A stretch of 64,000 nucleotides of DNA from Phaeosaccion multiseriatum (Eukaryota > Protista > Ochrophyta, other classes): NCBI GenBank assembly GCA_965112735.1, contig OZ218950.1, forward strand, positions 7,130,001 to 7,194,000, written 5' to 3'. The position numbers and the translations under genes are program-made. Under the pieces are notes generated by a model, which was given only the letters and a program-made list of their open reading frames with translations, made no database searches and was not told the origin of the DNA. The stretch's first letter is position 1. The number at the start of each line of letters is the position of its first letter. Positions 13,200-60,458 of this stretch are shown here, piece by piece.

Positions 13200-16210
<3,011 letters not shown>

Positions 16211-28261: not shown

Positions 28262-30158
28262 ATGCACGCCGCGAGCGTTGCGCTCCTGGTGCTAAATGCG
28301 GCCCACTTGAGTGCCGTCTTTCGGAAGAGTCGGCAGCTTTGGCAGAGAAGGAACTGCCCCATCATCAGGGCTCGCTACCCTGGCCTTCTCCTATTCTCCG
28401 TCGCGGGACAATCGGCTTCTGTGTACATCGTCGTTGCCGAATGCATCTGCAGGTTGGAGGGGGTCCCCTTCTCGTGTGACTTCATCATATTCTCATCCTT
28501 TTTGGTGGTCGCGTTGGGTGGTAAGTGACTTATTGAGCCTTGTTGCACAGCTGTTTGTGCCTGGTTTACTTTGTGTCCACGTCTCCTCACACACGGCGGA
28601 GCTGACACCTTCTTGCTTGTCCTGCCACCTCTCGAGTCCAGGTATCCCCGCTTTAATGCGAGCTCTGAAGATGATGATAGCGATGGCAGAACAGGAGACC
28701 CGTAGAAAGTATGCCTTCATTCTGGCGCCATTCTGGGCGTGGAAGCAGGTAGCGGGCGGCTTCGTGCAGAATATGGTGATGGCCTCGTTGGTGGCGTGGT
28801 TCAGACCCTTCCAGTCCGGGAGCGACTACTACTGCTACGTGATGCAGCCTTGGCAACTGCAGATCGGTCCCATCGCCATAATGGTTGGCTTCGGAGGGTA
28901 TTGGAGCAGACGGATTGTCCAGGCCAACGACCTCCTGCGCATCGGAGAGGAGAATGCCTACATTACGATGGGCTTAATAGTCACGTCTATCATCCACTTC
29001 TTCGTCCTCGTGGTGCAGGAGACTACGAACGCATGGAAGGTGTCGACGGAGCTGAACTTCGTGCTCGCTTCCCACTGCACCTTTAGTACACTTGCTATGC
29101 TGTATTGGTGGGGAGACCTCCGGTGGGTGCGCGATCCCATAGCCAGGAGTGCCTACTTGAAAGTCAAAACAGAGCCAAGCTTCCGAGCTCCGAACAGCAA
29201 ATCGGGACGACATGTGGTGCCGCTTTCTTCTTTGACAGAAACATCGCACAGCGCGGGGGACGGGATTGGTGGAGAGGTGGCCGCAATCATGGCCCATCCG
29301 GTCTTGGACAGGCTGTTCTACGACTTCATTCGCCGAGCGCTCTGCCTCGAGAGTTACGACTTCCTTCGGGCAGTGGAGGGGTACGACGCTCTCATGCGCC
29401 GCGAGCAGCAGAGGACGGAGGGCGGGAGTCGAGAAGAAGAAGAAGGACAGGCACCACCGCAAGCCGTGCAGCAAGGGGGCGAAGGAGCGGCCGGTGGAAG
29501 CGAGGAGGGCCCTCCTGCTCCGCTGCTTGAGCAGGTGTACGAGTGCTACACCTCCATCTGCCGCACGTACATTGAGCAGTTCTCGGACATGGAGGTGAAC
29601 ATCAACACCAAGATGCGCACGCAGGGGCTGCGCCTCATGGACAGGGACGTCTTCATGAGCGCCGATCAGGTGCGCTCCCCGTGCCCTTCTGCTGCTTCTG
29701 CTGCTTGCCTGTCCCTCGCTGCCCCTGCTGGCTGGACTACCCACCAGGCATGCCTGCTCCACCGCCTCGATCCTTCCTTCTCATTTTCTTCTCACGCGTC
29801 CCTCTGCCTGTCCTCGGCCGCCTCGCCCCACCCCCTCCTGTCGCTCCACTGTCGCTCCACTGTCGATCTGGCCTGGCAGGCGGAAGCTCGCGCCAGCGTG
29901 TTCCACCCCTCCGTCCTGGAGGTGCGGCACATGCTGCAAGACAACTTCCTCGCCAAGTTCCGTGAGAGCAAGGCATACCTCGAGGCCAGGGAGGCGGAAC
30001 AAGCGGCCGCAGCCCGGGAGGGGGAGGAGACGACGACGAAGGATGACCACAACGCGCTAGACGATTTCAACAAGGCCATCACCACCATGAACTCGCCCAA
30101 GGACCTTCCCCCGAGGGAGAGTCTCTTACGTTTGGCATCCACAACTCTTCAATCATGA
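28262..30158 (+). CDS. 7TM-RGS protein, copy 1; 3 exons
   Basis: Exons 28262-28520, 28642-29669, 29880-30158. Seven hydrophobic segments precede an RGS domain: IMAHPVLDRLFYDFIRRALCLESYDFL...ICRTYIEQFSDMEVNI...VFHPSVLEVRHMLQDNFLAKFRES. Confidence 0.88.
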
Positions 30159-30189
30159 TTGTATGGTATCCCTCCGATTTGTCACTCAG

Positions 30190-30334
30190 CCCCAGACACG
30201 CCTAGTGGCCTTGGCTCTGGGCTGCCAGGCCGCTCAGCGTTCGGGGCGTTCGGCCGATGTAGACCTAGGCCGGAGCCCCCCGGCCGGTCTAGGCCGCTCA
30301 TTTTTCAATCCTAGGCGGCCTCTAGCCCGCCTCT
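30190..30334. mobile_element. Truncated copy of the TIR element that lies 3' of the RGS genes
   Basis: Matches the reverse complement of ~57030-57151 (CCCCAGACACGCCTAGTGGCCTTGGCTCTGGGCTGCCAGG). Confidence 0.7.
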
Positions 30335-30354
30335 GTTGTGGAACTCTTGAGGCT

Positions 30355-30655
30355 CCGCACAGCCCAACATGACGCCGTGCAGAAGGGCCTCGTCACGATG
30401 GTGAAGGAAGAGGGCCTTGCACTTGCTTGTCAGGGGGATTGTGCACAACACCGGATTCCCCTTCTTCATGCGGGTACGGACGGTAACAGCGAGACGGGGG
30501 AGGAACAACAGAGAGAGGGGTGACGCCCACGTGGCCACACAAATGGGATGGACATAGCTAACTCCTCCTTGAACGTTTCAGCTACCAACCCACCACTAGT
30601 ATGACTATTTATCAACATCACGCTCACTGATGCCACCAACGCCATCAATAATAGG
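30355..30655 (+). mobile_element. Degenerate internal fragment of the CRE-like retrotransposon (endonuclease region)
   Basis: QHDAVQK, FPFFMR, GGTGACGCCCACGTGGCC and TCACGCTCAC-GATGCCACCAAC match ~45200-45500, with indels. Confidence 0.8.
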
Positions 30656-30718
30656 GGACATTTAATAGGAATCACCTAAGAAACTGAAAGTGTGATTGTG
30701 AGTGTGTGTGTGTGTGTG

Positions 30719-30751
<33 letters not shown>

Positions 30752-31054
30752 TGTTTGCGTGCATGTATCTCTGTGTCTCCAAACCCTCGAGGGGCCGGTT
30801 ACTCCCCCTCTTGTGCGGGGAGGGGGAGTGCAGGACCAGCTCCGCGGTTGAGCCGGCCCAAAGAAGAATATGTATTACCCTTTTAAGTGCCATCTATGAT
30901 TGTCCAAAAGGTGAGAAAAGGGCCATGCTCGTCGCCACCTGTGAATCCACGAGAAGAACCAACGTCTCACCCCTCCAACCACTGTGCCGTCTTGATCAGG
31001 GCGGCCCCTCACCCCCTGCCTCTCCTCTACGGGGCAGGGTAATAGCATCTTTAC

Positions 31055-33705
31055 ATGTCCCTCAAGCTAAGCGTGCCGATGGAGGTATGCACGCAGCTGC
31101 TTCCTCTCCGTCAACCCTGTAACCCTCTCCCAATACCAACACCATCTCTTTCTTTAAAATGCCCCTGGCGATGTCCCCCCCCCCCCCCCTTGCCATGTCT
31201 CACTGTGGGCGTTTGCAAGCCTTTCTATCGGCCCTGCTCTCCCCTCCGGCTGCTGACATCCTCCGCTCCCCCCCTGCCCTGTCTCACTGTGGCACTTGCA
31301 GGCCTTCCTCTGGGGCTTGCTCTCCTCCTCTTCGTTGGTGGTGGGCGCCGCAATCGCTCTTTACCGTCTGCCTAGCGAGCATACACGAGCTGTGCTTATG
31401 GCCTTTGGGGCCGGGGCGCTGCTTTTCGCCTTGTCCATCGAGCTCTTCGGTCACACGCTTTTCGAGAGGGAGTTCGAGTTTGAGATGAAGCAGGAGGAGG
31501 AGGTGAGAGAGCGGGGAGTGGCCCAGAGCGGTCTTATTACTATCTACCAAGCGTAGGGGGGGGAGTGGGAGTGTCCATGAGTGTGCACTCTGGTACTTCA
31601 CGCAGTGTCGCACAGGGGGGAGGCCACACGGACAGCAAACGGGCCAGGGGAAAAGGAGCAGGCGCGGCGCTTGCAGCGGTTTCCAGTGTGTGGCGAGGGA
31701 GGAGGGACAAAGTTGAGGAGGTTGGAGAGAACGGACGCAAACTCAAAAGGGAAGACGTTTCGCAATTCCTGGCGTGCTACCATAACTCGATACCCTCCCC
31801 GGGCACGACAATCGGTGCTCCCCTGGGACCTCCAACTCAAAGCCTGTGCCTCCGAAGTGCCTGGTAGCTCTGCATGCAGGGCCAACGCCCTCTGACTCGC
31901 CTGCCCCTTGCTGCCTCCCTCTGCCTCTGGCTTTCTTGCTCATTTCCTGCACCTATATATATATCCCTTACACGTTTTTCAGGTAGGTTCCTGTAAGTCA
32001 CTCTAATAATTCTCCCACCCCCCTCCCGCCCTTCTCTCTTGCGGACACACTCACACAAACATACGAATACACACACACACGCACACACACACACGCACGC
32101 ACACTCACACGCACGCACACACACTCACGCACACACACTCACACACACACTCACACGCACACCCACAGGGCCACCCCGGGGGCTACAACTATGCCCTGAT
32201 GCGGTCCGTGCTAGTCATGGCATCGTCCGCTGCCCTGGGGGGGGTCATCTTTGTCGCCATGGACAAGTGAGGTGGTGGAGGTGGGGGTGTGTTGGTGTGT
32301 GAGGAAGAGAGGAAGACAGCTGTGGTGAGAGAGGGAGGGGGGATGGTGGGGATGGTGGGCATGGTGGGCATGGGGGAAACGTGCGGTGGAGGGAAGGGAG
32401 GGATGGATCTTGTCTTGTCGCTGTGGAGGTGTGAGCAGCTGCCCCTTGGTGCTGACCTTTTGCCCGTCCTTTCCGACAAAACACACACTCACTCCTTTCA
32501 GAGCGTTGTCGGAGAAGGGAGGCTTCATGCGAAGGCAGTCCACGCTGGTGCTCAGCTCCAAGGGCCGGGCCTGGCTAGGCAGACTGAAGGACTCGCTTGG
32601 GGTGAGTGGGATGCCGGCCCAACTGCACACTCTAGCATCAGAGAGGGAAGGCGCAGGCAGCACTGCCCACTATCCTGCTATCGTTCGTGCTTGTGACACG
32701 TGTGCCAGAGGCGGAACTCGAGCTGCACAGCCACAGAGCGCCAGACAGTGTGACACTCTCTCGAGCTGCACAGCCACAGAGCGCCAGACAGTGTGACACT
32801 CTCTCGAACAGTCAGTGCCGCTCCTCTTGCCCTCCTGCCCTTACACGTAAACCACGCCCCCCCCCCCGGCATTTCCATCTATCCTCTCCTCTCCTCTCCC
32901 TCCTCACCCTCCCCTCAGACCCGTGCGCTGAACGTGCTTCAGAACGAGGAGCGCCTCTTCGGGGCAGCCCACCGTAAGGTCCTTGCGGAGATGTTGCTGC
33001 CGTTCGTGGTGGTCAGGGACTTCAAGCCCGGGGAGGTCATCCAGGTACGTTGTGGGTACGCGGCATTTGTGAATATGAGTAGTTGTACGCCAGTTGTGAA
33101 TGAGTATATGCCCTCTTGTGACTTTTAGTAGAAGGAAGTGACGTCAGCTCACCTAGTGCTTACGTTCTGTTCTATATTGTCCACGCCTCCTCACCCTCTC
33201 CTTTGCTGACGTATATACACTTACGCTGCTTTCGGCTCTTCTCCCTCCCTCCCCCCCAACACCCGAACGTCCAACGCGAGCAGCTGCAACAAAACGCACG
33301 GAGCCCTCTCTTCATCGTCATGAGTGGCTCCGTACACATTGTGTTTACGGAGGACCCAAGGGGAATGTCCGGGAGCGCCGACGACGGCTGGAAAGAGAAA
33401 GAGGCAACACACACGAGCAAGGCGGGCAGTAAGGCAAGGAGCAGCAAGGCTCTGATCATGGGCGGGCGGGGGAGGGGCGCGGGGGAGGAGGAGGAGGGGG
33501 AGGAGGAGGAGGAGGGGGACACAGAGGGGAACACAGAGGAGGACGCAGAGGAGGCGGATGGGCGGGAGGAGGGCGTGAGGGTGGGGGCCGTGCTCTGTGG
33601 GCAGGGGGAGGTGGACGGGGTGTGGCGAGGGGCTACGCCGGTCATTGTGAGGTGAGTGATTCTAAGGCCAGCCTGCAAGGGGTTGCTGAAAAAGCCCCCC
33701 CTTAG

Positions 33706-33740
<35 letters not shown>

Positions 33741-34566
33741 CGTGGTTATGGCTGGTTTTCTTTCTCTTCCCTCTCTCCTCTTAGCATCGCACTGAAACTC
33801 ACGCACACCTCCCTCTGGCTGGCTCTTACTGGCTCTCACTGGCTCTCACTGGCTCTCAGGGCCGACGAAGTGTTCGGAGAGATGAGTCTCGTGTGCGGGC
33901 GGCCCGTCAACTGCGTCGCCTTGGCAGCACCCCCCGCGAATGACCAACAGCACCAGAACGAGCAGCAGCAGCAGCAGCGAAGAAGAAGAAGAAGAAGAAG
34001 AAGAAGGAGCCTCTTCACCCCCTCCCGCAGTGCGAGTTTCAGTGCTGATGCCGGCGCCAGCGCGGGGCTCTCGTCCGCCAACGGCACCAGCGAGGGACCC
34101 GTGAGTCGCACGTCTGTATTAAAGCAGCACAAGATTCGCTCGGGCAGCAGCTTCGGCAGGAGTGTGGGCACCCACTCGACTATGATGGGCCGGCGGCCTA
34201 GCGGGGGGGGGGGGGGGGGCTGCTCGGCAGGACGTTCGGTATGACAAGGGAGGAGGGAAGAGAAGAAGCGGAAACCTTGGCCGGTGAGTGAGGGAGGGCG
34301 TTGGGGTTGCTCGGTTGGGAGTGAGTGAAGAGTGAGTGAGTAAGTGAATGAATGCGTGAGTGGGTGAGTGAGTGAGTTTCTCTGACTGCCTCCCCTCACT
34401 TCACTGCCCTCCCCGCGTCACAGGCGGGGCCAAGTGCTTGATGATCGATCGGAGACACATCGATCGCTTCTTCCGAGCGAGTCAAGCCGCCATGGCTGAG
34501 GTCACGCGCACACGCGCCGCAGTCGACGTGTTGCTCTACGACCACGTGAGTGAGTGCGTGCGTACG

Positions 34567-34598
<32 letters not shown>

Positions 34599-36617
34599 TG
34601 TGTATGTGTGCGTGTGTATGTGTGCGTGCGTGTGTGCATGCGTGCGAGGACTTGAGTGTTTTTGCGCTTTCATTTGCTTGGTGGGCTTTGTTGCGCACAC
34701 ACTTCGCGCCTTCCGACTCCTCCTCCTTACCCCCCCCCCCCCCCCTCTCCCTCCCTCCGTGCCTCGATCGCTGCTACATCTCTCCTCATTGATGATTCGA
34801 TGGCAATCAATGGCAACCAAAGGACGGAGACGGATGCACAGAGATGGTGGGGGTGGAGGTTCCCAGGGCCGAGGTGATGAGTCTGTTGTCCGTGTCGCAG
34901 GTCACAGAGTATGCCAAGGGAGACGTACTGTACAATGAGGTGAGCACGAAGGGGAAGGGGAACGGGAAGGGAGAGAGGGAGGGAGGGAGGGAGGGAGGGA
35001 GGGAGCAAGAGTGAAGGGGGGGGGGAGGTACTGAGTGGAGCGAGTTGCGTGCGTGCGTGTGTGGTACCATACCAACCCCAACCCCCATTTGTCGACTGTC
35101 CCTCGTATCACCAACAGGTGGACCGCAGCAGTCCGCTGTGGGTGGTGTGCCAGGGCGGAGTTCGGCTGTGCACTCCGCCAGACGAGCAGCAGCCCCCTTG
35201 GGACATCGGAGAGGGGGGGGGAGGGGGGCAGGGAGGACATGCTGCCAGCGACGGGCAAAACGACCAAGTGAGTGAGGGAGGCGAGGGAGGTGACGGAGGC
35301 GAAGCTCAATCAGGAGGAGGAGTCCAAAGAGGCCTCTCTCATCCCACCCCCCTCTCTCGTCTCCCTCACTCTCTGCTCCCCTCTCCTCCCCTCTCCTCCC
35401 CTCTCCTCCCCTCTCCTCCCCCCTCTCTCCTCCTCTCTCTCCTCCTCTCTCTCCCTTCCTCTCTCCCTCTCTCTCCCTGCCCCCCCCCCTCTCCTTCACA
35501 TACACCCACCCACCCCCCTCCCCTCCCCTCAGCGCCCCCCCCTGGAGAGCCCCCGTGGACACCAAGTGGTGTCTCGGGCAGGACCGAGGAGTCTACTCGG
35601 GGCCTCTTCTCTCCGCCCAGGTAGAGGTATATGGGCAGGGTAGGGGTATATGGGCAGGGTAGGGTAGAGGTATATGGGCAGGACCGCGGAGTCTACTCGG
35701 GGCCTCTTCTCTCCCGCCCAGGTAGAGGTATATGGGCAGGGAAGAGGTACTTGTGCAGGGCAGGGTAGAGGTGTATGGGTAGGGTTGGGTAGAGGTACTT
35801 GTGCAGGGCAGGGTAGAGGTACATGGGCAGGGTAGGGCAGGGCATGGTAGTCTATATCTCTGTTTTGTTGCATGTGACGAGGCCGTCCGTCCCCGCGGTA
35901 TGCGAACGCTCCCTCGCTCTTGTGCGATAGGGATAGCTTGCTCACGCACTCACTGATGTGTCGCTTCGTGTCGCTTCGTGCCTGTACGACAGGGGTAAGT
36001 CGGCAGATCTGTGAGGCGCTAGAGACCCCGACCATTGTGATGATGCTTCCTCGCAAGCGGAGGGAGCGCCTCTTCGATAGCGCCCCCAACCTCGCCACGG
36101 CCTTCCAAGCTGCTGCTGACCTACAGCCAGGTGCGTGTGTGGGTGTGTGGGTGTGTGGGTGTGTGGGTGTGTGGGTGTGTGCGTGTGTGCGTGTGTGCGT
36201 GTGTGGGTGTGTGGGTGTGTGGTTGTGTGGGTGCGTGGGTGGCTCCCTTCCCTTTCTGTCTGTGACCACCCTTCCACCCTTTCCCCCTTTCCCTTTGTCC
36301 GATCTCTTTCCCTCTCTCTCTGTTACCACCTTTCTCCCTACGACCCCCACACCCCACCACCCGCCAGGCACTTACACGAGGTACAAGGAGAGGTCGGAGA
36401 GGGCATCAAGGGCTGTGGAGATGAAGCCCTCTGAGGTACACACGCCCGGTAAGGACAGGGAGGAAGCGAAGGGAGGAGGGGCCCAGGTAGGCCTGTCCGG
36501 AGGGGAAGTACAGCAGTTGATGGTACAGCAGCAGGAGGAGACGACAGAGGAACCCGCGGCGGAGGCTGCCGCACGCGCCCCCGCAAAGGAAGAGGACAGA
36601 GACGAGGAGGAGCAGCA

Positions 36618-36654
<37 letters not shown>

Positions 36655-38780: not shown

Positions 38781-38784
38781 TGGT

Positions 38785-38803
38785 GCGATGATGATGATGA
38801 TGG

Positions 38804-38867
<64 letters not shown>
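38785..38867. repeat. (GAT)n microsatellite
   Basis: Visible tract just after the ZIP stop codon. Confidence 0.95.
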
Positions 38868-38868
<1 letters not shown>

Positions 38869-39411
38869 TGATGATGTGATGGGGTCATACAGGGTTATTT
38901 GGGATCATGTGGGGTCCTGTCGTGGGGAGGGTGTCTGTCTCTGCTCCTCTTAAGTGGTGAGGGTGTGTCCTCCTCCTCCTCCTCCTCCTGCTTTAGGCGC
39001 GCGAGATGGCAGCAGATGGAGAGGCAGCTCACTCACGCAGAGTGAATGAGAGAGCAGCAGCATAGAGCAGCGGCAACATGACCCACGGCACGCAGAGCTC
39101 TGCAGGTAGTGAAGTAGTGAGAAGCGGCACACACGCTCCTCGACAGTTACTTAACAGTTACTTAACAACACGCAATTGTCTCGAAGAGGGCACACCGTTC
39201 GTGCGTGCCCCGTGGAGGACGAAGCTCAACAAATACAACTTCAACATCAACAATACAACTACTTACTCATCAACAATACAATAACTTACTCATCATTTCG
39301 TATGGGACATCTTCGTGGAGCGAGCCAGTTAACAGTTGCAGTTTCGCAGGTTTTGTAACTGACTAAGGCTAGCCCTGCCACTCCAGCCACTCCCCAGGCA
39401 ATATGGCTTGA

Positions 39412-40337: not shown

Positions 40338-40388
<51 letters not shown>

Positions 40389-43981: not shown

Positions 43982-45981
43982 CCTGGCAGGGGCGATGCAA
44001 GCCCTCCCCTTCGCCCTCAGGGAGGTGGGACCGCGGAGCAGACAGGCCCTGTCCCAGTGTGGGCAGGGACCCAACGGATACCATATCCGAGTCATCCACA
44101 CAGCAGCACGTGTCTTTGACCAACTCCCCAGCGCGCCCAAGGCAGACGCAGCCCAAGGTGCTCTCAGTCAACAGGAGCGCTTCCTCAAGTCCCTTCCGCG
44201 AGGATGGGCTGTGTTGCTCGCCCACGGCCACATCAGCAGACCGGAGGCCCTTCTCCTCCCCAAGGGGGGAGGCTTGCTGCCAGGGGCGCTCGGGCCCACA
44301 TACTGTGACCTCCCCCCATGGGCAATCACAGCATCCCTGTACAGCGCGGCGCCAATCATCTCCCACCTCAGTGACAACAGATGGAGAGAACCATGGCTGA
44401 TCACCACGCTCTTCCCGGAGAGAGACGACACCCCAGAGCATGAAGGGCACACACCTGTCAGAGGCAGAGGGGACCAGCCGGCTGCGAGTGATGCCCCCGG
44501 GGGGGATGTGATACAATCTGGGGGTGAAGGAGCAGACTTAAGCGAAGGTGATAATGTTGGGGCCGCAGGGATACACCCTGGGGTGGGTGCGGAAGGGCGC
44601 GACGCGGCTGCAGGGCAGCAGGGGACCGCAGATGGACCAACCTCTGATAGCGCGGCAGACCCAGGGGGGGGGAGTGATGAAGACCCACAGGGTGAAAGTG
44701 ACGAAGACCCAGATGGTGGCAGTGACGCAGCCCCTGAGGATGAGCATGACGTGGAACCAGGCGGTGGTGATGACGATGATGAGGACGGCCGGCCACGCTG
44801 GCGGTCAGAGGAGACCAAGATGTTGGACGAGGGAGGACCCTCCATTCCACACAGCCGACACGGAGAGCGGCGAGGCGCCCAGAAGCGTTACACCAAGCTC
44901 CTCACGTCGAAGGCGAGGGCGGACTTCTTGGATCGATTAAAAGCCATCCCACAGCAGGTCCAACGGGAGAAGTACCTGGCCAGAGCCCTCAGCCACAGCG
45001 TGAAAGGTGCTGGTGCGTGGCTCCACCTTCAGCCGACCAGGACGGCAGGGGGAGCACCACTCCACCTCACCGACGCCGAGCACAAGAGTGCCATTCGGCG
45101 AAGACTTGGCTTTGACCCCACCTACAGCAAGGACTGTCATAAGTGCCCTAGCAAGGCGCTGACGGAGGGGCACATCATCACCTGCACGAAGACGGGGCTC
45201 AGCACACCCCAACACGACGCTGTGCAGAAGGCACTTGTCGCCCTGCTGAAGAGCGAGGGCCTGGGCAGAGGGATAGTCCAGAACACCAGCTTCCCCTTCT
45301 TCATGAGGGCAAGAACGGTCACCCCGCGACGAGGGAGAGGGGGGAGCAACGCCGTGAGAGGTGACGCCCACGTGGCCAAGCAGATGGAGATGGACATCGT
45401 GACTCCCCCCAGGATGTTTGAGCTTCCATCCGATCATGAATATGGGGACGGCCACAAGTCCCTCATGATCGACGTCACGCTCACGGATGCCACCAACATT
45501 ACCAATCGGGCCAAGGCATCGAAGGAGGCACTCGCTGCAGCCAAGAAGGCTGAAGCAACCAAGCGCACCAGGTATGGTGTGCCACATGGAGGCATGGAGG
45601 GCCAGGGTGGAGACATCCACTATGACCCCACGAGGTATCATCTCGTCCCTTTTGGGATGGAGCAGCAAGGTGCATTTGGCCCGTCAGCACAGATGTTTAT
45701 CAAAACACTCGCCACCCACATGGCTGGGGGGCACGAACATCTTGACACGAGGGCTTACGCGAGAGCTGTTTGCGTCATTCGGCGACGATTAGCCGTAGCG
45801 CTCCAGAGGGCCCGACACGAACGATCGGTTCGACACAGGATCCTGGCTGGTATCAACTTTGTTCCAATGGGGAGAACTGATGAGTCAGAGGGACACGACC
45901 TCGAGGGCTAAGTTCCCCGGGGCGGTGAGACATTACTTTTAGACAACCATAGATGGCACTTAAGGGTGTAATATATATTAT
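43982..45981 (+). mobile_element. 5'-truncated CRE-type non-LTR retrotransposon with 11-bp TSD
   Basis: ACTTGACTTGT at 43971-43981 and 45982-45992; AT-rich 3' tail; encodes the post-RT region plus endonuclease; three related fragments occur in the window. Confidence 0.85.
43995..45911 (+). CDS. Retrotransposon ORF remnant: post-RT region, CCHC knuckle and restriction-like endonuclease; no RT core
   Basis: LLLPKGGGL, AGAWLHLQP...AIRRRLG, CHKC-x8-H-x3-C, QHDAV, MDIV...IDVT, AEATKRTRY, PFGMEQQGAFG. No YxDD motif. Confidence 0.8.
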   Translation: MQALPFALREVGPRSRQALSQCGQGPNGYHIRVIHTAARVFDQLPSAPKADAAQGALSQQERFLKSLPRGWAVLLAHGHISRPEALLLPKGGGLLPGALGPTYCDLPPWAITASLYSAAPIISHLSDNRWREPWLITTLFPERDDTPEHEGHTPVRGRGDQPAASDAPGGDVIQSGGEGADLSEGDNVGAAGIHPGVGAEGRDAAAGQQGTADGPTSDSAADPGGGSDEDPQGESDEDPDGGSDAAPEDEHDVEPGGGDDDDEDGRPRWRSEETKMLDEGGPSIPHSRHGERRGAQKRYTKLLTSKARADFLDRLKAIPQQVQREKYLARALSHSVKGAGAWLHLQPTRTAGGAPLHLTDAEHKSAIRRRLGFDPTYSKDCHKCPSKALTEGHIITCTKTGLSTPQHDAVQKALVALLKSEGLGRGIVQNTSFPFFMRARTVTPRRGRGGSNAVRGDAHVAKQMEMDIVTPPRMFELPSDHEYGDGHKSLMIDVTLTDATNITNRAKASKEALAAAKKAEATKRTRYGVPHGGMEGQGGDIHYDPTRYHLVPFGMEQQGAFGPSAQMFIKTLATHMAGGHEHLDTRAYARAVCVIRRRLAVALQRARHERSVRHRILAGINFVPMGRTDESEGHDLEG

Positions 45982-46107: not shown

Positions 46108-47384
46108 ATGATTGAAGGGAAGAACTCGCGTGCTCACATCATGGTTCCCATTATAAGTCTGAAATGCCTGCTGGAGGAACCGGTTGAGGCCGAATCGGAA
46201 AATGGGATCGGAGCAGGAGTGGCGGAGAAAGCCAGAGAATGGGACGAGATCATGACAGAAGTGGGTTTTGTAGTGGTGGTAGACCATGGTGTGCAGCAGG
46301 AGGTGATGGACTGCATGTTCAGGGCCAGCAAAGGTAGGCGAGGCGCTTGGCTTTCCATCCCAATTCTGCGTCCCTCCTCCTTGACTTGGCTGACAGTGTC
46401 CGTCCTCGTGTCCACTCTGCCGCCCTGATGCGTGTGTGCCTCCACTCAGAGTTCTTCAAGAGGCCTCCTGAAGAGAAGGTACGGGCAAACTACTCCTGTC
46501 CTTGTGTGTGTTTGTGTGTGTGTGCGTGTGCCCAGGACGGCTCTCACCTCTCCCCCTTCGTGTCTCTTGCCTCTGTCTGGTGTTCCTCCCTCTCTCTGTT
46601 CTACCTTCAGGCCCAATTTAACTATGGGCCCTACGGCAACGCCAGGGGGGGCTTCACGGCTCAGGGAGTCGAGGCGGTGGCGAGGTCCAACGGAGGAGAC
46701 TCAAAAGATGCCCCACCCGACCTGGTGGAGAGCTACGTGTTACGCTCTAGCTGCTTGATGAAGCAGACTGGGGAGGGCTCAGAGGACGACGGCCACCCTG
46801 ACCACCCGGCAGAGCTGTTTCGCGCCGCCAGGGAGTACGCGGCTCAGCTCGAGCGCCTCTTGCAGCGGATACACCATCTCAGCGCCAGGGGTTTGGGCCT
46901 CGCGGATGTGACCTTCTTCGACGACTTCTACGGCCCAGGCCCAGGCAATGCCAATATACTGAGGCTGGCCTACTACCCAGCTGTGGCCGAGGTCCTGCCG
47001 CGGCAGCAGAGGTACGGGGCCCACACAGACTACCAGGGTTTGACCCTCCTGGCGTTGGAGGACGAGGACCAGTGCCTTGAGGTGTGGCTCCAGGAGCGGT
47101 GGCAGAGGGTCGAGTGTCCTCGGGGAGGCATCGTCGTCAACGTTGGGCAGCTCTTCACCACCTGGACGAAGGGAAAGTGGCCCTCCACGCTGCACCGAGT
47201 GGTGCCCGCCAGTCCAGGGGTCGAACGCTTCTCGCTCCCCTTCTTCACCGGCCCTTCATTCGGCGCCACCATCTTCCCCATTGGGAGCGACGCTTCTGAC
47301 CCGAGCAATGGCGTCAACACTGAAGAGCACCTCATGGCCCAGCTCAGAGCCACCAATACGAAGAGCGAAGAGCTGACGAGCTGA
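46108..47384 (+). CDS. 2OG-Fe(II) dioxygenase (IPNS/DIOX_N type); 3 exons
   Basis: VPIISL...VGFVVVVDHGV, EFFKRPPEEK, LRLAYYP...GAHTDY, VVNVGQ...STLHRV...RFSLPFF (HxD...H...RxS). Confidence 0.92.
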
Positions 47385-48141
47385 CGAGCTGACAGGTGCT
47401 GGCCACTGCGTCAAAGAACGGCGTACAGCGTGGACAGCACACCGGCCAATTTGACGAGAGACTTGCGTGGGGCCGAGCACGTGGACAAGCCGTACTGTAA
47501 GTCAGCCATTTTTGAGGGGGGGTTTGGCGGTTTTTTGCGATGGCGGGAAGGAGAGAGGGTCAGAGGGAGTGCGAGAGAGACAACAAAGCAGAGACATGAT
47601 GAGGCGAGCGAGTAGCACGTAGGCAAGACAGAACGCAGGCATGACTGTAAATAATTGACTTGTATATATATACATACTCACCCACAGGACGAGTACTACT
47701 ATGATGGTCTTCGCCTTGTCCTGTACAGCAGAACCCGCCTGGCTGCTTGGCCGTGGACCGTGATGACCGATGGTACCGTGGTTGGTGGTTGGTCCGCTGA
47801 TCCCCCGGCCAGCAAAGAGAGCCCCAGCTGATGATGAAGGAGGGAAGGAGGAGGGGGTGGAGGATTTAGCCCCAGCGGGAAGCAGCGACGTGCCTGAGGA
47901 GGTGTTGGTTGTTTAGTGTGTGAGGATATGAGAATGTGGACTGTGAATTTCAGTTCTTGGGCCTCTCCACCCGTTTACAACAATTTCTATCCAAGTGCCA
48001 AACAATTGCCTCCAGCATTTGCCCACAGCGAGGCTGACCCGGAAAGAGCGGTAGAACAGAGAGGAGAGGTAGTAGCGAGGGACACAGGCTGGGCGGCGGC
48101 CCTCGCTTCCTCCAGGCAGCGGTGCACTCCTGCTGGTGGCG

Positions 48142-51028: not shown

Positions 51029-51054
51029 ATGTATCTCTGAGCCCCTGCGGCTCT

Positions 51055-51377
51055 CTCGCTTCGTCCCACTATAGTAGCATAGAGGGGGGAGGGGAGGGAG
51101 GGGAGGGGAGGGGAGGGGAGGAGCCGCTCACCTTCAAGGAGGAAGGAGGTGTGTGCTCTGAGCGGGGTGGGCATGCGGACGAACGGGTATACGCGGCATA
51201 TATGGGCCTATGGGCCGGCTCGAGCCCGAGGAGCGACACACAGCCTTGGAGGCCAGCGTGGAGAGTCGATCGCCAGCTGCAGTAGAGCAGTGAACAACCA
51301 ACGCCCTTAGCAGCAGAGCAGAGCCGCACGTATCGCCTTGGTGGAGCATAGAAGGGCAGCAGCCGTTAGTGAGCCCC

Positions 51378-51409
<32 letters not shown>

Positions 51410-52298
51410 TGGTGATACAGCAGCCGCAGTGGTGGCAACAGCAGAGTGTACAGTACACGGCAGCCACTTGCTCCACTGGGGCGGACAAAGGATGAGCGTT
51501 GTGGGTGGGGAGGAGGAGGGAGGAAACATAGAGAGGGTTTCAGGACAAAGAGAGGGGGTGAGGAGACTTTTGTTTTTTAAATTGTCCCAGGGGGGTGGGC
51601 AGTAGCACACAAGTGGCCCGACTTGGGTCTTGGAAGGCTACCCATGTGCCCGTATATAAAGAGGGCAGAGCTCCTTTCCCGTGTCTGCGTGAAAGCGCGT
51701 GGTGTGTGTTAAGCTCACCAAAGAATGACAAGCACCGACCCGCCTCCTCCCTCTCTCACTATTCAACGTAAGGCCCGAGCCCCGCTGCTCCAGTGCGTGC
51801 CTACCCCTCGCCTCCCCCCCCCCCCTCCTTCTCCTCCTCCTCCTGGACAGGGGAGCGCCCCTCCTCCTCCTCCTCCTCCTCCTCCTCCTTGGAGTCTGCA
51901 GCCGAGGCGAAGAGGGCCTGCAGCACAGGGGTCACAGCTGACAGCGACGCGCAGGGCGGGAGAGGACCACTCCTGGCCTTCGAGACACTGCTGCTCGCGT
52001 CCTTGTCCTTGCTGCTGCCGTCGCTCCAGGCAGCCCCCGTACTACCTCTCTCCGCTGGCGCTGAATCACCAACTGCTTGGGATGCCTGCCGCGCCCCGTC
52101 GAACGCTACACCCACCTCCAGCGGACACGCTCCCCCCTTGCTTGGGCCCCCTTCCCCTCCTGTACACCCAAGCTCACCCCCCGCCCCCCCGGCCTGCTCC
52201 TGCCCCAGCACGGGTACCTTTGGATACCTTTGGCTGAAGTGCGTGAGGATGACGCGCTTCACAGCCATCTGTGACGCCACCCTCAGGGCCTCCCCTAC
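51055..52298. repeat. Segment A, duplicate of 60112-61380 (RNase Z 3' end plus 3' flank)
   Basis: Near-identical from CTCGCTTCGTCCCACTATAG to CTCAGGGCCTCCCC, with a 30-bp deletion near 52090. Confidence 0.95.
51801..52298 (-). pseudogene. Orphan RNase Z C-terminal fragment
   Basis: VGEALRVASQM...ILTHFSQRYPKVP without the upstream HxHxDH core; in-frame 10-codon deletion. Confidence 0.88.
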
Positions 52299-52317
52299 TA
52301 TGGGGAGGACTGACTGA

Positions 52318-52699
52318 TCGGCCGCAGATACGCCAAGCGGCCTGGGCCTATTCTGGACAACTGTCCGGCCTAGACGGTGGCATTGCCCAGAGTGCAAAGA
52401 GCCACTATGGCGCCCATAAGCCAATGAATGGGATTGAAAGCGAGAGCTTCCGTTGTCTCTTTCCGCCTCGCCTGCCCTGCGAGAAGTGCATGCCCAGGCC
52501 TACAGGTGTGCTGCTGCCACTGGCTAGGCGGCCCCACGCACGCGCCCGCGGTCACGGGGAGGCTGCCTAGAGGCTGCCTAGAGGCGGGCTAGAGGCGGGC
52601 CAGAGGCCGTCTAGGATTGAAAATGAGGGGCCTAGGGTGGCCGAACGCCGAGCGGCCTGGCAGCCCAGAGCCAAGGCCACTAGGCGTGTTTGGGGCCGA
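52318..52699. mobile_element. 382-bp TIR element (TCGG...CCGA) 3' of RGS copy 2
   Basis: Imperfect ~30-bp TIR: TCGGCCGCAGATACGCCAAGCGGCCTGGGC versus reverse-complemented right end TCGGCCCCAAACACGCCTAGTGGCCTTGGC. Only CTGA is shared by the flanks. Confidence 0.7.
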
Positions 52700-52727
52700 C
52701 TGACGCATCCGGAGGGATACCATACAA

Positions 52728-54606
52728 TCATGATTGAAGAGTTGTGGATGCCAAACGTAAGAGACTCTCCCTCGGGGGAAGGTCCTTGGGCGAGTTCATG
52801 GTGGTGATGGCCTTGTTGAAATCGTCTAGCGCGTTGTGGTCATCCTTCGTCGTCGTCTCCTCCCCCTCCCGCGCCGCGGCCGCTTGTTCCGCCTCCCTGG
52901 CCTCGAGGTATGCCTTGCTCTCACGGAACTTGGCGAGGAAGTTGCCTTGCAGCATGTGCCGCACCTCCAGGACGGAGGGGTGGAACACGCTGGCCCGAGC
53001 TTCCGCCTGCCAGGCCAGATCGACAGTGGAGCAACAGTGGAGCGACAGTGGAGCGACAGGAGGGGGTGGGGCGAGGCGGCCGAGGCGAGAGGGACGCGTG
53101 AGAAGAGAATGAGAAGGAAGCATCGAGGGTGGAGCAGGCATGCCTGGTGGGTAGTCCAGCCAGCAGGGGCAGCGAGGGACAGGCAAGCAGCAAAAGCAGC
53201 AGAGCACGGGGAACGCACCTGGTCGGCGCTCATGAAGACGTCCCTGTCCATGAGGCGCAGCCCCTTCGTGCGCATCCTGGTGTTGATGTTCACCTCCATG
53301 TCCGAGAACTGCTCAATGTACGTGCGGCAGATTGATGTGTAGCACTCGTACACCTGCTCAAGCAGCGGAGCAGGAGGGCCCTCCTCGCTTCCACCGCCCC
53401 CTCCTTCGCCCCCTGGCTGCACGGCTTGCGGTGGTGCCTGTCCTTCTTCTTCTTCTCGACTCCCGCCCTCCGCTATCTGCTGCTCGCGGCGCACGAGAGC
53501 GTCGTACCCCTCCACTGCCCGAAGGAAGTCGTAACTCTCGAGGCAGAGCGCTCGGCGAATGAAGTCGTAGAACAGCCTGTCCAAGACCGGATGGGCCATG
53601 ATCTCGGCCACCTCCGCACCAATCCCGTCCCCCGCGCTGTGCGGTGTTTCTGTGAAAGAAGAAAGCGGCACCACATGTCGTCCCGCTTTTCTGTTCGGAT
53701 CTGTTTTGACTTTCAAGTAGGCACTCCTGGCTATGGGGTCGCGCACCCACCGGAGGTCTCCCCACCAATACAGCGCAGCAAGTGAAGTAACAAAGCTGTG
53801 CGAAGCGAGCACGAGGTTCAGTGCCGTCGACACCTTCCATGCGTTCGTAGTCTCCTACGAGGTCGAAGAAGTAGATGACAGCCATCACTATGAAGCTCAT
53901 CGCCGTGCAGGCCATCTCCTCTGCGATGCGCAGGAGGTCGTTGGCCTGCACAATCCGTCTGCTCCAATACCCTCCAAAACCAGTCAGTATGACGAGGGGA
54001 CCGATCTGCAGTTGCCAAGGCTGCATCGCGTAGCAGTAGTAGTCGCTTCCGGACTGGAAGGGTCTGAACCACGCCACCAACGAGGCCATCACCATATTCT
54101 GCACGAAGCTGCCCGCTACCTGCTTCCATGCCCAGAATGGCGCCAGAATGAAGGCATACTTTCTACGGGTCTCCTGTTCTGCCATCGCTATCATCATCTT
54201 CAGAGCTCGCATTAAAGCGGGGATACCTGGACTCGAGAGGTGGCAGGACAAGCAAGAGGGAGTCAGCTCGGCCGTGTGTGAGGAGACGTGGACACAAAGT
54301 AAACCAGGCACAAGCAGCTGTGCAACAAGGCTCAATAAGTCACTTACCACCCAACGCGACCACCAAAAAGGATGAGAATATGATGAAGTCACACGAGACG
54401 GCCCCCCCCTCCAACCTGCAGATGCATTCGGCACTGACGACGTACACAAAAACCGATTGTCCTGCGACGGTGCATAGGAGAAGGCCGGGGTAGCGAGCCC
54501 TGATGATGGAGCAGTTCCTTCTCTGCCAAAGCTGCCGACTCTTCCGAAAGACGGCGCTCAAGTGGGCCGCATTTAGCACCAGGAGCGCGACGCTCGCGGC
54601 GTGCAT
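52728..54606 (-). pseudogene. 7TM-RGS copy 2, frameshifted
   Basis: Colinear with copy 1, but GTGGTGCAG is reduced to GTAG (5-nt loss, ~53857) after TM6, shifting the frame. There is also a 15-nt in-frame deletion. An assembly error cannot be excluded. Confidence 0.8.
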
Positions 54607-55604
54607 CCTTCGGTCCAGCCTCTTCCTTGGGCCGCTAGTAATGCGCTGGTGGAGACGCCCTGCTGCCTCTGCTCTTGTGATAATTTCCCTTCATATTTTT
54701 TTGTACTTCGTTGTGATGTCCATCATAAATACCAATTGATAAATACGAAACTGCCGCCGGAGAAGGCTGTTGTAACCGCAACCCACGGCCCCACCTACGC
54801 CCCCAGAGCCCCACCAACCACCACCACCGGACGGAGCAGGCACACCCCCACGCAGCGACCCCGCGGACAGCCCCCCACCCTCCCCCCTTCATGGGCCAGG
54901 GAGAGGACCCCCACCAGGAAGCCCACCAGGGAGCCCACCCCCCAGTCCCCCCGCCTCGCCCCCCGGCCGGTAGCCCCCCCGGAACCCCACCCCATGAAGA
55001 CCCGGACGACAACGACGACCAAGACCCCCCCCACCCCGAGGACGAAGGAGAGGACCGCTGCCTGCACTGCCTGGAGCCGCTTAACAGCGCGCCCACTGCC
55101 CCCACCACGCATGCGCACAGCACCCCCATCTGACGCCATCTTCCACAGCGCTACAGATCCACCGCACTTCCCCACCAGCTCCGACTGCGCCTACTGCCGC
55201 AGCTCGGAAACCCACGAGGACCTCATCTCCCACCTTCCTCCGGACACTGCTAGCTACACGCCTGGCCAACCCGCCTTACTAACGACCGACTCGCGTTCCC
55301 TCCTGTTGTAGGTCGATGCCATTTGTGATATGCGAATTACTGACGCACGTCGCTCAGGAGCCTGGGTTCCCCTCTCAGAGCCTGGTTGTGTAAGGACAGA
55401 GCGGCCAGCAGGCTCGCTCTCGGGATAAACTGTATTAGCTAATACACGAAACTGTCTAGCTAGTAGTCTAATTGACTATTTACACTCCACCTGGCCCCCC
55501 ACGCGATCGTGCACGCCAGATCTGCCACATCTGTGCCGAAGTCATCACTGCAGGAGAGGCGATCTCCTACCCCTGCGGTCACAGCTTCCACCCCCGCTGT
55601 CAGG

Positions 55605-56025
55605 TGTTGGAAGGCCTCAGATGAGATGGGCCATAAGTCAATGGCCCAGGCCCAGGCAGATGCGGTGAGAACGGGTGGCGTGGCTCTCACTATCCTATGT
55701 GCGAAGGTGGTCGTTTAGGACTAGCATGCGATACGTAATAGAGGCAAGGCTGGCTGCTTGGCTGGCTTTGGGGTTGTAAAACGACATGCGCACGACTGAC
55801 ATGCGCTGTCGCCTACAGATAGGATGGAACTAGACACACGGACAAGGTAACAGCAACCCCAAAGCCAGCCTAGCAGCCAGCCTTGCCTCTATTACTTATC
55901 GCATGCTAGTCCTAAACGACCACATTCGCACATAGGATAGTGAGAGCCACGCCACCCGTTCTCACCGCATCTGCCTGGGCCTGGGCCATTGACTTATGGC
56001 CCATCTCATCTGAGGCCTTCCAACA
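55605..56025. repeat. Long inverted repeat: 172-bp arms, 77-nt loop
   Basis: 55605-55776 pairs with 55854-56025; three mismatches seen by eye. Confidence 0.92.
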
Positions 56026-56280
56026 TCCCCAATGCCTATCCCGGGGCCTTCCAACATCCCCAATAGCTATCCGCCACTTCCAACACAGGCGGGCAGCATG
56101 GCCGACAGGGTGGCCACCCCCGCCCTGCAAGACCTTCACCTCGACGCCCGTGGCCGACTCCGCTGCATCAGCGTCCTCGAACAACGCGCCGGAAACGAGC
56201 CCTGCCTCACTCGCTTCCGGCCGCTCATCACCGTCGACAACATCAGGACCCACTACGCAATCAGCTCGCCGCTCACGACC

Positions 56281-56749
56281 TCCTGGACAGGGAAGCGCCC
56301 CTCCTCCTCCTTGGAGTCTGCAGCCGAGGCGAAGAGGGCCTGCAGCACAGGGGTCACAGCTGACAGCGACGCGCAGGGCGGGAGAGGACCACTCCTGGCC
56401 TTCGAGACACTGCTGCTCGCGTCCTTGTCCTTGCTGCTGCCGTCGCTCCAGGCAGCCCCCATACCACCTCTCTCCGCTGGCGCTGAATCACCAACTGCTT
56501 GGGAGGCCTGCGGCGCCTCATCGTCCGGCGGAATGCTCACCACGAGCCCGTCGAACGCTACACCCACCTCCAGCGGACACGCTCCCCCCTTGCTTGGGCC
56601 CCCTTCCCCTCCTGTACACCCAAGCTCACCCCCCGCCCCCCCGGCCTGCTCCTGCCCCAGCACGGGTACCTTTGGATACCTTTGGCTGAAGTGCGTGAGG
56701 ATGACGCGCTTCACAGCCATCTGTGACGCCACCCTCAGGGCCTCCCCTA
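56281..56749 (-). pseudogene. Second orphan RNase Z C-terminal fragment (partial segment A)
   Basis: Matches ~60890-61378 with a shortened poly-E tract. Confidence 0.88.
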
Positions 56750-56769
56750 CTGTGGGGAGGACTGACTGA

Positions 56770-57151
56770 TCGGCCGTAGATACGCCAAGCGGCCTGGGCC
56801 TATTTTGGATAACTGTCAGGCCTAGACGGCGGCACTGCCCAGAGTGCAAAGAGCCACTATGGCGCCCATAAGCCAATGAATGGGATTGAAAGCGAGAGCT
56901 TCCGTTGTCTCTTTCCGCCTCGCCTGCCCTGCGAGAAGTGCATGCCCAGGCCTACAGGTGTGCTGCTGCCACTGGCTAGGCGGCCCCACGCACGCGCCCG
57001 CGGTCACGGGGAGGCTGCCTAGAGGCTGCCTAGAGGCGGGCTAGAGGCGGGCCAGAGGCCGTCTAGGATTGAAAATGAGGGGCCTAGGTTGGCCGAACGC
57101 CGAGCGGCCTGGCAGCCCAGAGCCAAGGCCACTAGGCGTGTCTGGGGCCGA
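56770..57151. mobile_element. 382-bp TIR element (TCGG...CCGA) 3' of RGS copy 3
   Basis: Near-identical to 52318-52699; co-duplicated with the RGS gene. Confidence 0.7.
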
Positions 57152-57179
57152 CTGACGCATCCGGAGGGATACCATACAA

Positions 57180-59071
57180 TCATGATTGAAGAGTTGTGGA
57201 TGCCAATCGTAAGAGACTCTCCCTCGGGGGAAGGTCCTTGGGCGAGTTCATGGTGGTGATGGCCTTGTTGAAATCGTCTAGCGCGTTGTGGTCATCCTTC
57301 GTCGTCGTCTCCTCCCCCTCCCGGGCTGCGGCCGCTTGTTCCGCCTCCCTGGCCTCGAGGTATGCCTTGCTCTCACGGAACTTGGCGAGGAAGTTGTCTT
57401 GCAGCATGTGCCGCACCTCCAGCACGGAGGGGTGGAACACGCTGGCGCGAGCTTCCGCCTGCCAGGCCAGATCGACAGTGGAGCGACAGTGGAGCGACAG
57501 GAGGGGGTGGGGCGAGGCGGCCGAGGCCAGGCAGAGGGACGCGTGAGAAGAAAATGAGAAGGAAGCATCGAGGCGGTGGAGCAGGCATGCCTGGTGGGTA
57601 GTCCAGCCAGCAGGGGCAGCGAGGGACAGGCAAGCAGCAAAAGCAGCAGAGCACGGGAAACGCACCTGGTCGGCGCTCATGAAGACGTCCCTGTCCATGA
57701 GGCGCAGCCCCTTCGTGCGCATCTTGGTGTCGATGTTCACCTCCATGTCCGAGAACTGCTCAATGTACGTGCGGCAGATGGAGGTGTAGCACTCGTACAC
57801 CTGCTCCAGCAGCGGAGCAGGAGGGCCCTCCTCGCTTCCACCGGCCCCTCCTTCGCCCCCTTGCTGCGCGGCTTGCGGTGGTGCCTGTCCTTCTTCTGCT
57901 TCTCGACTCCCGCCCTCCGCTATCTGCTGCTCGCGGCGCACGAGAGCGTCGTACCCCTCCACTGCCCGAAGGAAGTCGTAACTCTCGAGGCAGAGCGCTC
58001 GGCGAATGAAGTCGTAGAACAGCCTGTCCAAGACCGGATGGGCCATGATCTCGGCCACCTCCGCACCAATCCCGTCCCCCGCGCTGTGCGATGTTCCTGT
58101 CAAAGAAGAAAGCGGCACCACATGTCGTCCCGCTTTGCTGTTCGGAGCTCGGAAGCTTGGCTCTGTTTTGACTTTCAAGTAGGCACTCCTGGCTATGGGG
58201 TCGCGCACCCACCGGAGGTCTCCCCACCAATACAGCATAGGAAGTGTATTACCAATGCAGTGGGCAGCGATCACGAGGTTCAGCGCCGTCGACACCTTCC
58301 ATGCGTTCGTAGTCTCCTGCACCACGAGGACGAAGAAGTAGATGACAGTCGTGGCTATGAGGCTTATCGTAATGTAGGCATTCTCCTCTCCGATGCGCAG
58401 GAGGTCGTTGGCCTGGACTATCCGTCTGCTCCAATACCCTCCAAAACCAGTCAGTATGGCGAGGGGACCGATCTGCAGTTGCCAAGGCTGCACCGCGTAG
58501 CAGTAGTAGTCGCTCCCGGACTGGAAGGGTCTGAACCACGCCACCAACGAAGCCATCACCATATTCTGCACGAAGCTGCCCGCTACCTGCTTCCACGCCC
58601 AGAATGGCGCCAGAATGAAGGCATGCTTCTTACGGGTCTCCTGTTCTGCGATCGCTATCATCATCTTCAGAACTCGCAAAATAGAGGGGATACCTGGATC
58701 GAGAGGTGGCAGGACAAGCAAGAGGGAGTCAGCTCGGCCGTGTGTGAGGAGACGTGGACACAAAGTAAACCCAGGCACAAACAGCTGCAACAAGCGTCAA
58801 TGAGTCACTTACCACCCAACGCGACCACCAAAAAGGATGAGAATATGATGAAGTCACACGAGAAGGGGGCCCCCTCCAACCTGCAGATGCATTCGGCACT
58901 GACGATGTACACAAAAGCCGATTGTCCCGCGACGGAGAATAGGAGAAGGCCAGGGTAGCGAGCCCTGATGATGGGGCAGTTCCTTCTCTGCCAAAGCTGC
59001 CGACTCTTCCGAAAGACGGCGCTCAAGTGGGCCGCATTTACCACCAGGAGCGCGACGCTCGCGGCGTGCAT
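57180..59071 (-). CDS. 7TM-RGS protein, copy 3; 3 exons, apparently intact
   Basis: Same exon structure and motifs as copy 1 (MHAASV...VALG|GIPSILR...SADQ|AEARAS...TLQS*). Confidence 0.88.

Positions 59072-60420: not shown

Positions 60421-60458
<38 letters not shown>

Follow-up and report, generated by a model that had tools for sequence, protein, structure and literature searches.

Positive selection in the seven-helix bundle, and constraint on the RGS domain, in a young tandem family of 7TM-RGS genes of the alga Phaeosaccion multiseriatum

Here we describe a group of closely related genes of the ochrophyte alga Phaeosaccion multiseriatum, each encoding a seven-transmembrane (7TM) helix bundle that is continued by a regulator of G-protein signalling (RGS) domain. 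The analysis started from a stretch of 64,000 nucleotides, hereafter the window, which covers positions 7,130,001-7,194,000 of contig C1 (OZ218950.1, assembly GCA_965112735.1) in a genome of 67 Mb, 22 contigs and ~60% G+C. Self-BLAST of the window revealed three copies of ~2.0 kb that share 93.3-95.5% DNA identity, one on the plus strand (28226-30244) and two on the minus strand (52641-54642 and 57093-59107). The gene has three exons and 521 codons, and is intact in copies 1 and 3 and broken in copy 2. A preliminary description, made from the letters of the window alone, had presented these copies as a young 7TM-RGS receptor family whose divergence is concentrated in the last transmembrane helices (TM). 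The features are as follows, in window coordinates; posterior probabilities are naive empirical Bayes (NEB) values for a ratio of nonsynonymous to synonymous substitution rates (dN/dS, omega) above 1.

28262..30158, plus strand: copy 1 (A), intact 7TM-RGS gene of 521 codons, a spliced open frame
28262-28520, 28642-29669 and 29880-30158, plus strand: exons 1, 2 and 3 (including the stop codon) of copy 1
28521-28641 and 29670-29879, plus strand: introns 1 and 2 of copy 1, the latter of 210 nt and in frame
28953..28994, plus strand: hypervariable TM6 patch of copy 1, codons 191-204 (NEB P(omega>1) at least 0.98 at codons 194, 197, 199, 201 and 202)
29064..29099, plus strand: hypervariable TM7 patch of copy 1, codons 228-239 (NEB P(omega>1) at least 0.96 at codons 228, 231, 232, 233, 235 and 239)
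29268..29987, plus strand: RGS domain of copy 1, codons 296-465, split by intron 2 (29670-29879), from Pfam PF00615, a structure model and the family profile
52728..54606, minus strand: copy 2 (B), pseudogene (exon 1 54348-54606, exon 2 53219-54226, exon 3 52728-53006)
53874-53915 and 53774-53809, minus strand: TM6 and TM7 patches of copy 2, from alignment and translation
57180..59071, minus strand: copy 3 (C), intact gene with a 521-codon spliced frame and splice sites kept
58813-59071, 57666-58693 and 57180-57458, minus strand: exons 1, 2 and 3 of copy 3
58694-58812 and 57459-57665, minus strand: introns 1 and 2 of copy 3
58341-58382 and 58236-58271, minus strand: TM6 and TM7 patches of copy 3
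51878..59149: tandem duplication holding copies 2 and 3 (unit 51878-54684 against 56300-59149, 94.2% identity, self-BLAST)

The intron borders (GT..AG) are kept in all 11 close paralogues of the genome, which are introduced below. Intron 1 holds a stop codon in every copy, and its length ranges from 102 to 130 nt with differences that are not multiples of three. As the alignment to homologous proteins of Tribonema, Ectocarpus and Undaria continues unbroken over both exon junctions, both introns can be regarded as confirmed. For database searches and structure prediction we used single exons or natural in-frame read-throughs, namely window:28644-30155 for copy 1 and L048:1060-2937 for a paralogue, L048, in which both introns are in frame; the codon columns of the three exons were set side by side in the dN/dS computation only. 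Copy 2 had been called dead, and it is indeed disrupted: 5 bp are missing between window bases 53856 and 53857, so that translation runs out of frame after codon 210, just past TM6, and the product lacks TM7 and the RGS domain. A second deletion of 15 bp, between bases 53699 and 53700, is in frame, and the start codon and splice sites are still intact. Since the RGS half of copy 2 still shows a dN/dS of 0.25-0.39 against copies 1 and 3, either the inactivation is recent or the 5-bp deletion is an assembly error.

Searching the entire genome at the DNA level, we found 11 close copies at 86-95% identity, which fall into four clusters: five at C1:7.16-7.20 Mb (the three in the window and two just past its end), three at C1:6.20-6.21 Mb, two on C16 and one on C11. 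The full conventional frame is present in 6 of the 11. Copy K carries a stop codon and a deletion of ~190 bp, and copy H has ATA in place of the ATG start as well as a shifted C-terminal tail; the tail is also altered in copy G and diverged in copy J. With copies B and K broken and H lacking its start codon, 3/11 copies are dead or dying, in agreement with the young birth-and-death family that had been proposed from the window. A protein search of the genome added about 20 more distant paralogues. Of these, one lies on C7 and shares 59% identity, roughly ten form tandem arrays on C10, C11 and C15 and share 30-39%, and the weaker matches fall on C2, C4, C5, C8 and C13. Beyond this species, a profile built from 19 paralogues gave 39 matches at E<=0.001 (best 3e-16) among 1.84 billion representative proteins, none of them from the host species itself. 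Among the 20 of these 39 whose names were checked, the named sources were Tribonema, Ectocarpus, Undaria and Chrysoparadoxa only, the rest being environmental contigs. Three Tribonema genes have adjacent accession numbers and lie on one contig. These outside homologues have a like layout, and most of them exceed the Pfam RGS cut-off (24-37 bits in Tribonema and Undaria). A word-index protein search with exon 2 returned no match.

The membrane half of the protein was modelled with AlphaFold2 (AF2) on paralogue L048. The model (mean predicted local distance difference test score, pLDDT, 77; predicted template modelling score, pTM, 0.73) contains seven TM helices, a helix 8 (H8) and the RGS domain, with low confidence confined to the two intron-encoded loops. 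Mapped onto copy 1, the predicted helices are TM1 3-28, TM2 40-65, TM3 72-101, TM4 116-139, TM5 157-180, TM6 187-214, TM7 222-243 and H8 252-259, giving the seven helices expected of a 7TM protein; TM3b to TM7 are also visible in an AF2 model of copy 1 itself. In fold comparisons with VIA, the L048 bundle came closest to the transmembrane domains (TMDs) of class C G-protein-coupled receptors (GPCRs), with Z 20.3 for GABA-B (root-mean-square deviation, rmsd, 3.2 Å over 235 residues), 19.6 for mGlu4 and 19.2 for GPR158 (rmsd 3.2 Å over 236 residues). Almost all of the top ~40 matches are class C TMDs, and class A reaches ~17, so that the margin is only ~3 Z units. Foldseek on the 626-residue model gave E-values of 0.04 and above, a weakness that we attribute to the two intron-encoded loops. 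Sequence searches placed the bundle outside the class C family. Pfam 7tm_3 (PF00003) had no match in the window pieces at E<=1, nor in ten homologues at E<=0.01, and the family profile matched GABA-B1 marginally (E=0.23). No large extracellular ligand-binding domain is present, as TM1 begins at residue 3 and the homologues begin at most ~20 residues before TM1. Given the missing 7tm_3 match and extracellular domain, the bundle is best described as having a class C fold without being a class C family member. Two cysteines, C72 at the top of TM3 and C151 in the second extracellular loop, are conserved in the whole young subfamily (C151 in 19/19 sequences of alignment A1) and presumably form the usual GPCR disulphide pair.

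The cytoplasmic half is an RGS domain by several lines of evidence. Pfam PF00615 scored 26.5 bits on the copy 1 read-through 28644-30155, above the cut-off of 23.9, and 19.5 bits, under the cut-off, on exon 2 alone. The family profile matches RGS2 over the entire domain at E=2.4e-11, and also RGS5, RGS16, RGS8 and RGS4, and in the HMMER alignment the family motif E-V-N-I stands against E-I-N-I of RGS2 and E-V-N-I of RGS5. This motif is invariant in all paralogues whose exon-2 piece extends to it (17/19 of alignment A1), and from what is known of RGS4 we take the asparagine of the E-V-N-I/L motif to be the catalytic contact to G-alpha. A phmmer search of the copy 1 RGS region against PDB sequences gave no match at E<=1. 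The AF2 model of copy 1 from TM3b onward (mean pLDDT 75, and >90 in the RGS helices) superposes on RGS4 in its complex with G-alpha-i1 (1agr) at VIA Z 14.4 and rmsd 1.6 Å over 116/116 residues, and reaches Z 14.5 with both RGS16 and RGS3. The Pfam match, the family profile, the AF2 models and the VIA fold matches thus all point to the 7TM plus RGS architecture first read from the window. Candidate substrates exist in the host genome, since at least six G-alpha loci exceed the PF00503 cut-off (C8:802 kb, C8:2.11 Mb, C14:2.03 Mb, C1:5.49 Mb, C11:2.165 Mb and C11:2.245 Mb). Most likely, the RGS domain accelerates the hydrolysis of GTP by one or several G-alpha proteins of the alga. The two G-alpha loci on C11 lie 80 kb apart, and the G-alpha set is large for an alga, in keeping with the large RGS set.

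We then compared the copies along their length. Among the three window copies, pairwise nucleotide divergence is 10.3-16.5% in the TM6-7 segment (28931-29105) as against 2.3-4.0% in the RGS part of exon 2, 2.0-4.0% in intron 2, 3.3-5.1% in intron 1 and 0-3.5% in exon 3. The reported near-identity of the RGS domain, C-terminal tail and introns beside strongly different last helices is therefore real, and the TM6 and TM7 peptides quoted for the three copies match our translations of copies 1, 2 and 3 exactly. The zone of divergence had been given as TM5-TM7; this holds for TM6 (191-204) and TM7 (228-239), but not for TM5, which is moderately variable with an omega of 0.77. Between the two patches, codons 205-227, which run from the outer end of TM6 through the third outer loop into the start of TM7, are almost invariant. 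The pattern recurs across all 11 genomic paralogues. Sliding windows over the 11 copies gave a ratio of nonsynonymous to synonymous differences per site (pN/pS) above 1 at codons 41-60, 81-100, 181-215 (pN up to 0.37) and 221-245 (ratio up to 3.1). In TM4, the linker and the RGS core, the ratio falls far below 1. Variability at TM6 193-202 extends to the older subfamily, which varies much less at TM7 231-233.

Codon models were fitted with our own GY94/F3x4 likelihood program, for which a check with IQ-TREE gave omega values of 2.07 (TM6-7), 0.40 (RGS domain) and 0.93 against our 2.04, 0.40 and 0.91, and an identical log-likelihood for the RGS domain. Over codons 1-250 of the 11 copies, a model with a positively selected class of sites was strongly preferred (M2a against M1a: likelihood-ratio test statistic, LRT, 99.65, p=2e-22), with omega 5.8 at 11.7% of sites. 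When each segment was analysed on its own tree, TM6-7 (codons 186-245) had an overall omega (M0) of 2.04, significantly above 1 (LRT 10.7, p=0.001), so that the excess of amino acid replacements suspected in the last helices was upheld for TM6-7. The other segments gave M0 values of 1.28 for TM2-3 (not significant), 0.42 for TM4, 0.77 for TM5, 0.52 for the linker, 0.40 for the RGS domain and 0.50 for the tail. The corresponding M2a/M1a LRTs were 67.9 for TM6-7 (p=2e-15), 21.9 for TM2-3 and 1.0 for the RGS domain, which is under purifying selection, as the idea of a fixed output had anticipated. Sites with a posterior of at least 0.95 are 82, 90 and 91 in TM3, 164 in TM5, 194, 197, 199, 201 and 202 in TM6, and 228, 231, 232, 233, 235 and 239 in TM7.

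Could such a pattern arise without adaptation, through gene conversion that homogenises the rest of the gene and leaves TM6-TM7 with older divergence or relaxed constraint? Recombination is indeed present: a test of the pairwise homoplasy index (PHI) type detects it over the whole coding sequence (CDS; p=0.0005) and in the 7TM domain (p=0.03). Synonymous divergence between clusters is 0.12-0.17 in the receptor half (codons 1-250) and 0.04-0.07 in the RGS half (296-465), a 2-3.7-fold difference that would fit homogenisation of the 3' half, and three copies are decaying. Intron 2, although located within the RGS domain, differs by 6-13% between clusters. This contrast might stem in part from conversion of the 3' half, from constraint on synonymous sites or from fast slippage in the CT-rich intron. 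However, relaxed constraint would raise omega to 1 at most, whereas TM6-7 shows 2.04 over 60 codons that include 24 nearly invariant ones, and the signal survives when the pseudogenes are left out (M2a/M1a LRT 72.5 for codons 1-250 of the eight intact copies). It also survives on the own tree of TM6-7, a segment within which the PHI-type test finds no recombination (p=0.87). If the hot patches had an older history, their synonymous divergence should be raised. Comparison of four independent sister pairs gave a pS of 0.058 for the hot patches and 0.064 for the whole CDS, so that the patches are no older than the gene around them; their pN of 0.168 exceeds the whole-CDS pS (p=1.6e-6), and their pN/pS is 2.89 (binomial p=0.024). 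A whole-genome DNA search found no donor locus for the TM6-7 of any copy. On these grounds a single gene-conversion tract or mosaic was rejected, as was relaxed constraint, the latter on an omega significantly above 1 that persists in the intact copies. We regard a non-adaptive origin of the pattern as very improbable.

The selected sites cluster near mid-membrane on TM2-TM7 and extend into the cytoplasmic half on TM3, TM6 and TM7. In GPCRs, a deep central region links the ligand pocket with the G-protein side. The explanation that we favour, with a probability of roughly 55%, is that of a receptor-GAP (GTPase-activating protein) family in which selection retunes the helix bundle and the RGS output stays constant. 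Each protein consists of a seven-helix domain of GPCR fold, almost without an extracellular part, that is fused in cis to the RGS domain via helix 8 and a linker of ~40 residues. The family grows by local tandem duplication and loses members by frameshift, deletion and loss of the start codon. After each duplication, positive selection would swap residues in a belt that runs from mid-membrane to the cytoplasmic side, mainly on TM6 and TM7 with few on TM3 and TM5, and the loops, TM4, the linker and the RGS domain would be retained. Presumably expressed and sensory in role, each paralogue would most likely answer a different small or membrane-borne signal, or set a different coupling between bundle and GAP, with the switching-off of G-alpha as the common output. 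That the variable residues form a ligand pocket is plausible.

Several observations weigh against this explanation. The three window copies alone give a dN/dS of 1.6-2.5 in TM6-7 (0.49-0.65 outside it), but these values are individually non-significant (Fisher p ~0.2), with only 2-4.5 synonymous changes per pair in TM6-7; the claim of selection therefore needs the genome-wide set of 11 copies. Recombination over the CDS can inflate site-model LRTs that are computed on a single tree, and because it was detected in both the whole CDS and the 7TM domain we placed the weight on the per-segment results. The hot patches used in the sister-pair comparison were picked post hoc. The count of seven helices is based on a 35%-identical paralogue and an alignment, the model of copy 1 itself starting at TM3b. 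As for position, the selected sites lie at a relative depth, counted from the outer surface, of 0.25-0.86, below the level at which pockets for external ligands are typically found; variability shows no significant 100-degree helical periodicity in TM6 or TM7, and the selected positions are no more polar than other membrane positions.

The same layout bears on two further adaptive explanations. It is about equally compatible with a deep central belt and with an interface on the helix surface. Class C receptors signal as dimers that touch through TM6, and the closest folds to our bundle are class C TMDs, which are obligate dimers, GPR158 included. The TM6/TM7 surface could thus be a protein-protein interface, either between bundles or with a kinase or G-alpha partner, where selection would stop cross-pairing of paralogues and so insulate new copies. 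Variable positions that span more than one helical face, are not especially polar and reach the cytoplasmic half of TM3, TM6 and TM7, together with invariant extracellular loops, would suit such an interface. On the other hand, the selected sites lie at similar depth on TM2-TM7, which fits a central belt better than one outer surface; TM3, TM5, TM6 and TM7 are generally known to line the internal pocket of GPCRs; and dimerisation of the algal bundle is only assumed. We consider an interface rather unlikely. Antagonistic co-evolution, in which a virus, parasite or toxin targets the receptors and changes in TM6-TM7 bring escape, is in our judgement improbable. An omega of ~6-7 at 10-28% of sites and rapid gene turnover are typical of genes in such arms races, but there is little or no variation in the short N-terminus and the three extracellular loops, and the variable sites are buried at mid-membrane or deeper, hardly reachable from outside.

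The DNA around the genes has features of its own. A 177-bp segment at 59325-59501, which is 254-430 bp before the ATG of copy 3, repeats at 26679-26855 with 96.6% identity, 1407-1583 bp before the ATG of copy 1. Because this common upstream segment sits farther from copy 1, ~1.15 kb of extra DNA must lie near the start of that copy, and it may separate copy 1 from its promoter. A 207-codon minus-strand open reading frame (ORF) was duplicated along with copies 2 and 3 (51801-52424 and 56253-56876); a Pfam search with it gave no match, and a third copy of its surroundings is found at 60143-61377 (95% identity to 51100-52295). Between copies 2 and 3 lies an inverted repeat (55605-55776 / 55854-56025) with 172-bp arms that are 98% complementary and 77 bp apart, which may represent either a foldback or the two termini of a mobile element. 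An ORF of 638 codons at 43995-45911, also without a match in a Pfam search, has a motif in common, judged by eye, with a short ORF just 3' of copy 1 (30338-30523), and may represent a mobile element that has left fragments beside the receptor genes. The window further holds a long, minisatellite-like tandem array at 15069-15617 and a second repeat family (5890-7015 against 63224-63460, in inverted relative orientation). The plus-strand ORF at 46347-47384 encodes a 2OG-Fe(II) oxygenase domain (PF03171, E=2.7e-16) and appears to be an ordinary neighbour gene.

How do these genes compare with known systems? Proteins with 7TM and RGS domains are known from plants (AtRGS1), many bikonts, early fungi and some unicellular relatives of animals, and are thought to be receptor-GAPs for self-activating G-alpha (PMC3971589; PMC3386157). 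For Ectocarpus, 47 RGS proteins have been reported (PMC3971589), and stramenopiles are not mentioned by Urano et al. 2012 (PMC3386157). The algal proteins share with AtRGS1 the seven-helix domain, the very short N-terminus, the cytoplasmic linker and the C-terminal RGS domain, and G-alpha genes occur in the same genome. This likeness of the 7TM part is one of architecture, whereas by sequence its named relatives come only from ochrophytes, besides environmental proteins. Plants usually have one copy, in contrast to the 11 young and about 20 older paralogues in tandem arrays here. In the searched papers that use the term '7TM-RGS' we found no report of tandem diversification or positive selection. 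Thus the architecture is known, and what is new is the way in which the family evolves, with gene birth and death in a young array, positive selection at particular sites of the bundle, and an RGS domain that stays frozen.

Two other systems combine a similar bundle with an RGS domain. GPR158, an orphan receptor of class C, docks RGS7-Gbeta5 in trans (PMC8611064). Like the algal protein, it pairs a class-C-like bundle that lacks a Venus-flytrap domain with an RGS domain that terminates signalling by G-alpha, but there the RGS protein is separate and recruited in trans, whereas the algal RGS domain is fused in cis and the algal bundle has no Pfam 7tm_3 match. GPR158 is, moreover, a single conserved gene and the algal family is expanding. 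Among fungi, MoRgs7 of Magnaporthe (PMC10184898) is a 7TM domain fused to RGS, and Zoopagomycota have clusters of 7tm_3+RGS proteins (a protein-atlas look-up that we treat as a lead only), in line with the class-C-like fold found here. No sequence kinship to the fungal proteins was detectable in the profile search, and no comparable tandem diversification has been reported for them.

The mode of evolution, by contrast, recalls the olfactory, vomeronasal and bitter-taste GPCRs of animals, which by general knowledge also form birth-and-death tandem arrays with frequent pseudogenes, selection on TM3, TM5, TM6 and TM7 and a conserved signalling end. The animal receptors activate G proteins as guanine nucleotide exchange factors (GEFs), whereas the algal proteins, as GAPs, would inactivate them; the variable sites of the animal receptors are found chiefly in the outer half of the bundle, those of the algal proteins from mid-membrane to the cytoplasmic half; and the algal family is far smaller. 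It is possible, although we put it somewhat below even odds, that the family is a chemoreceptor-like repertoire of receptor-GAPs rather than receptor-GEFs, in which copies retuned at a mid-membrane pocket would discriminate many small or lipophilic signals by switching G-alpha off. Whether a 7TM-RGS bundle binds ligands, and which ones, is still unsettled even for the plant protein, and selection confined to the bundle beside a frozen RGS domain argues for a bundle specificity that matters. If real, such a chemoreceptor-like repertoire would provide the first evidence from evolution that the 7TM half of these proteins is a genuine ligand-binding module that can be tuned. The analysis singles out ~20 residues (82, 86, 90, 91, 164, 194-202 and 228-239), and the paralogues supply natural variants suited to swaps at these positions. 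The family would also show that receptor-GAP signalling can evolve the repertoire dynamics of animal smell and taste receptors.

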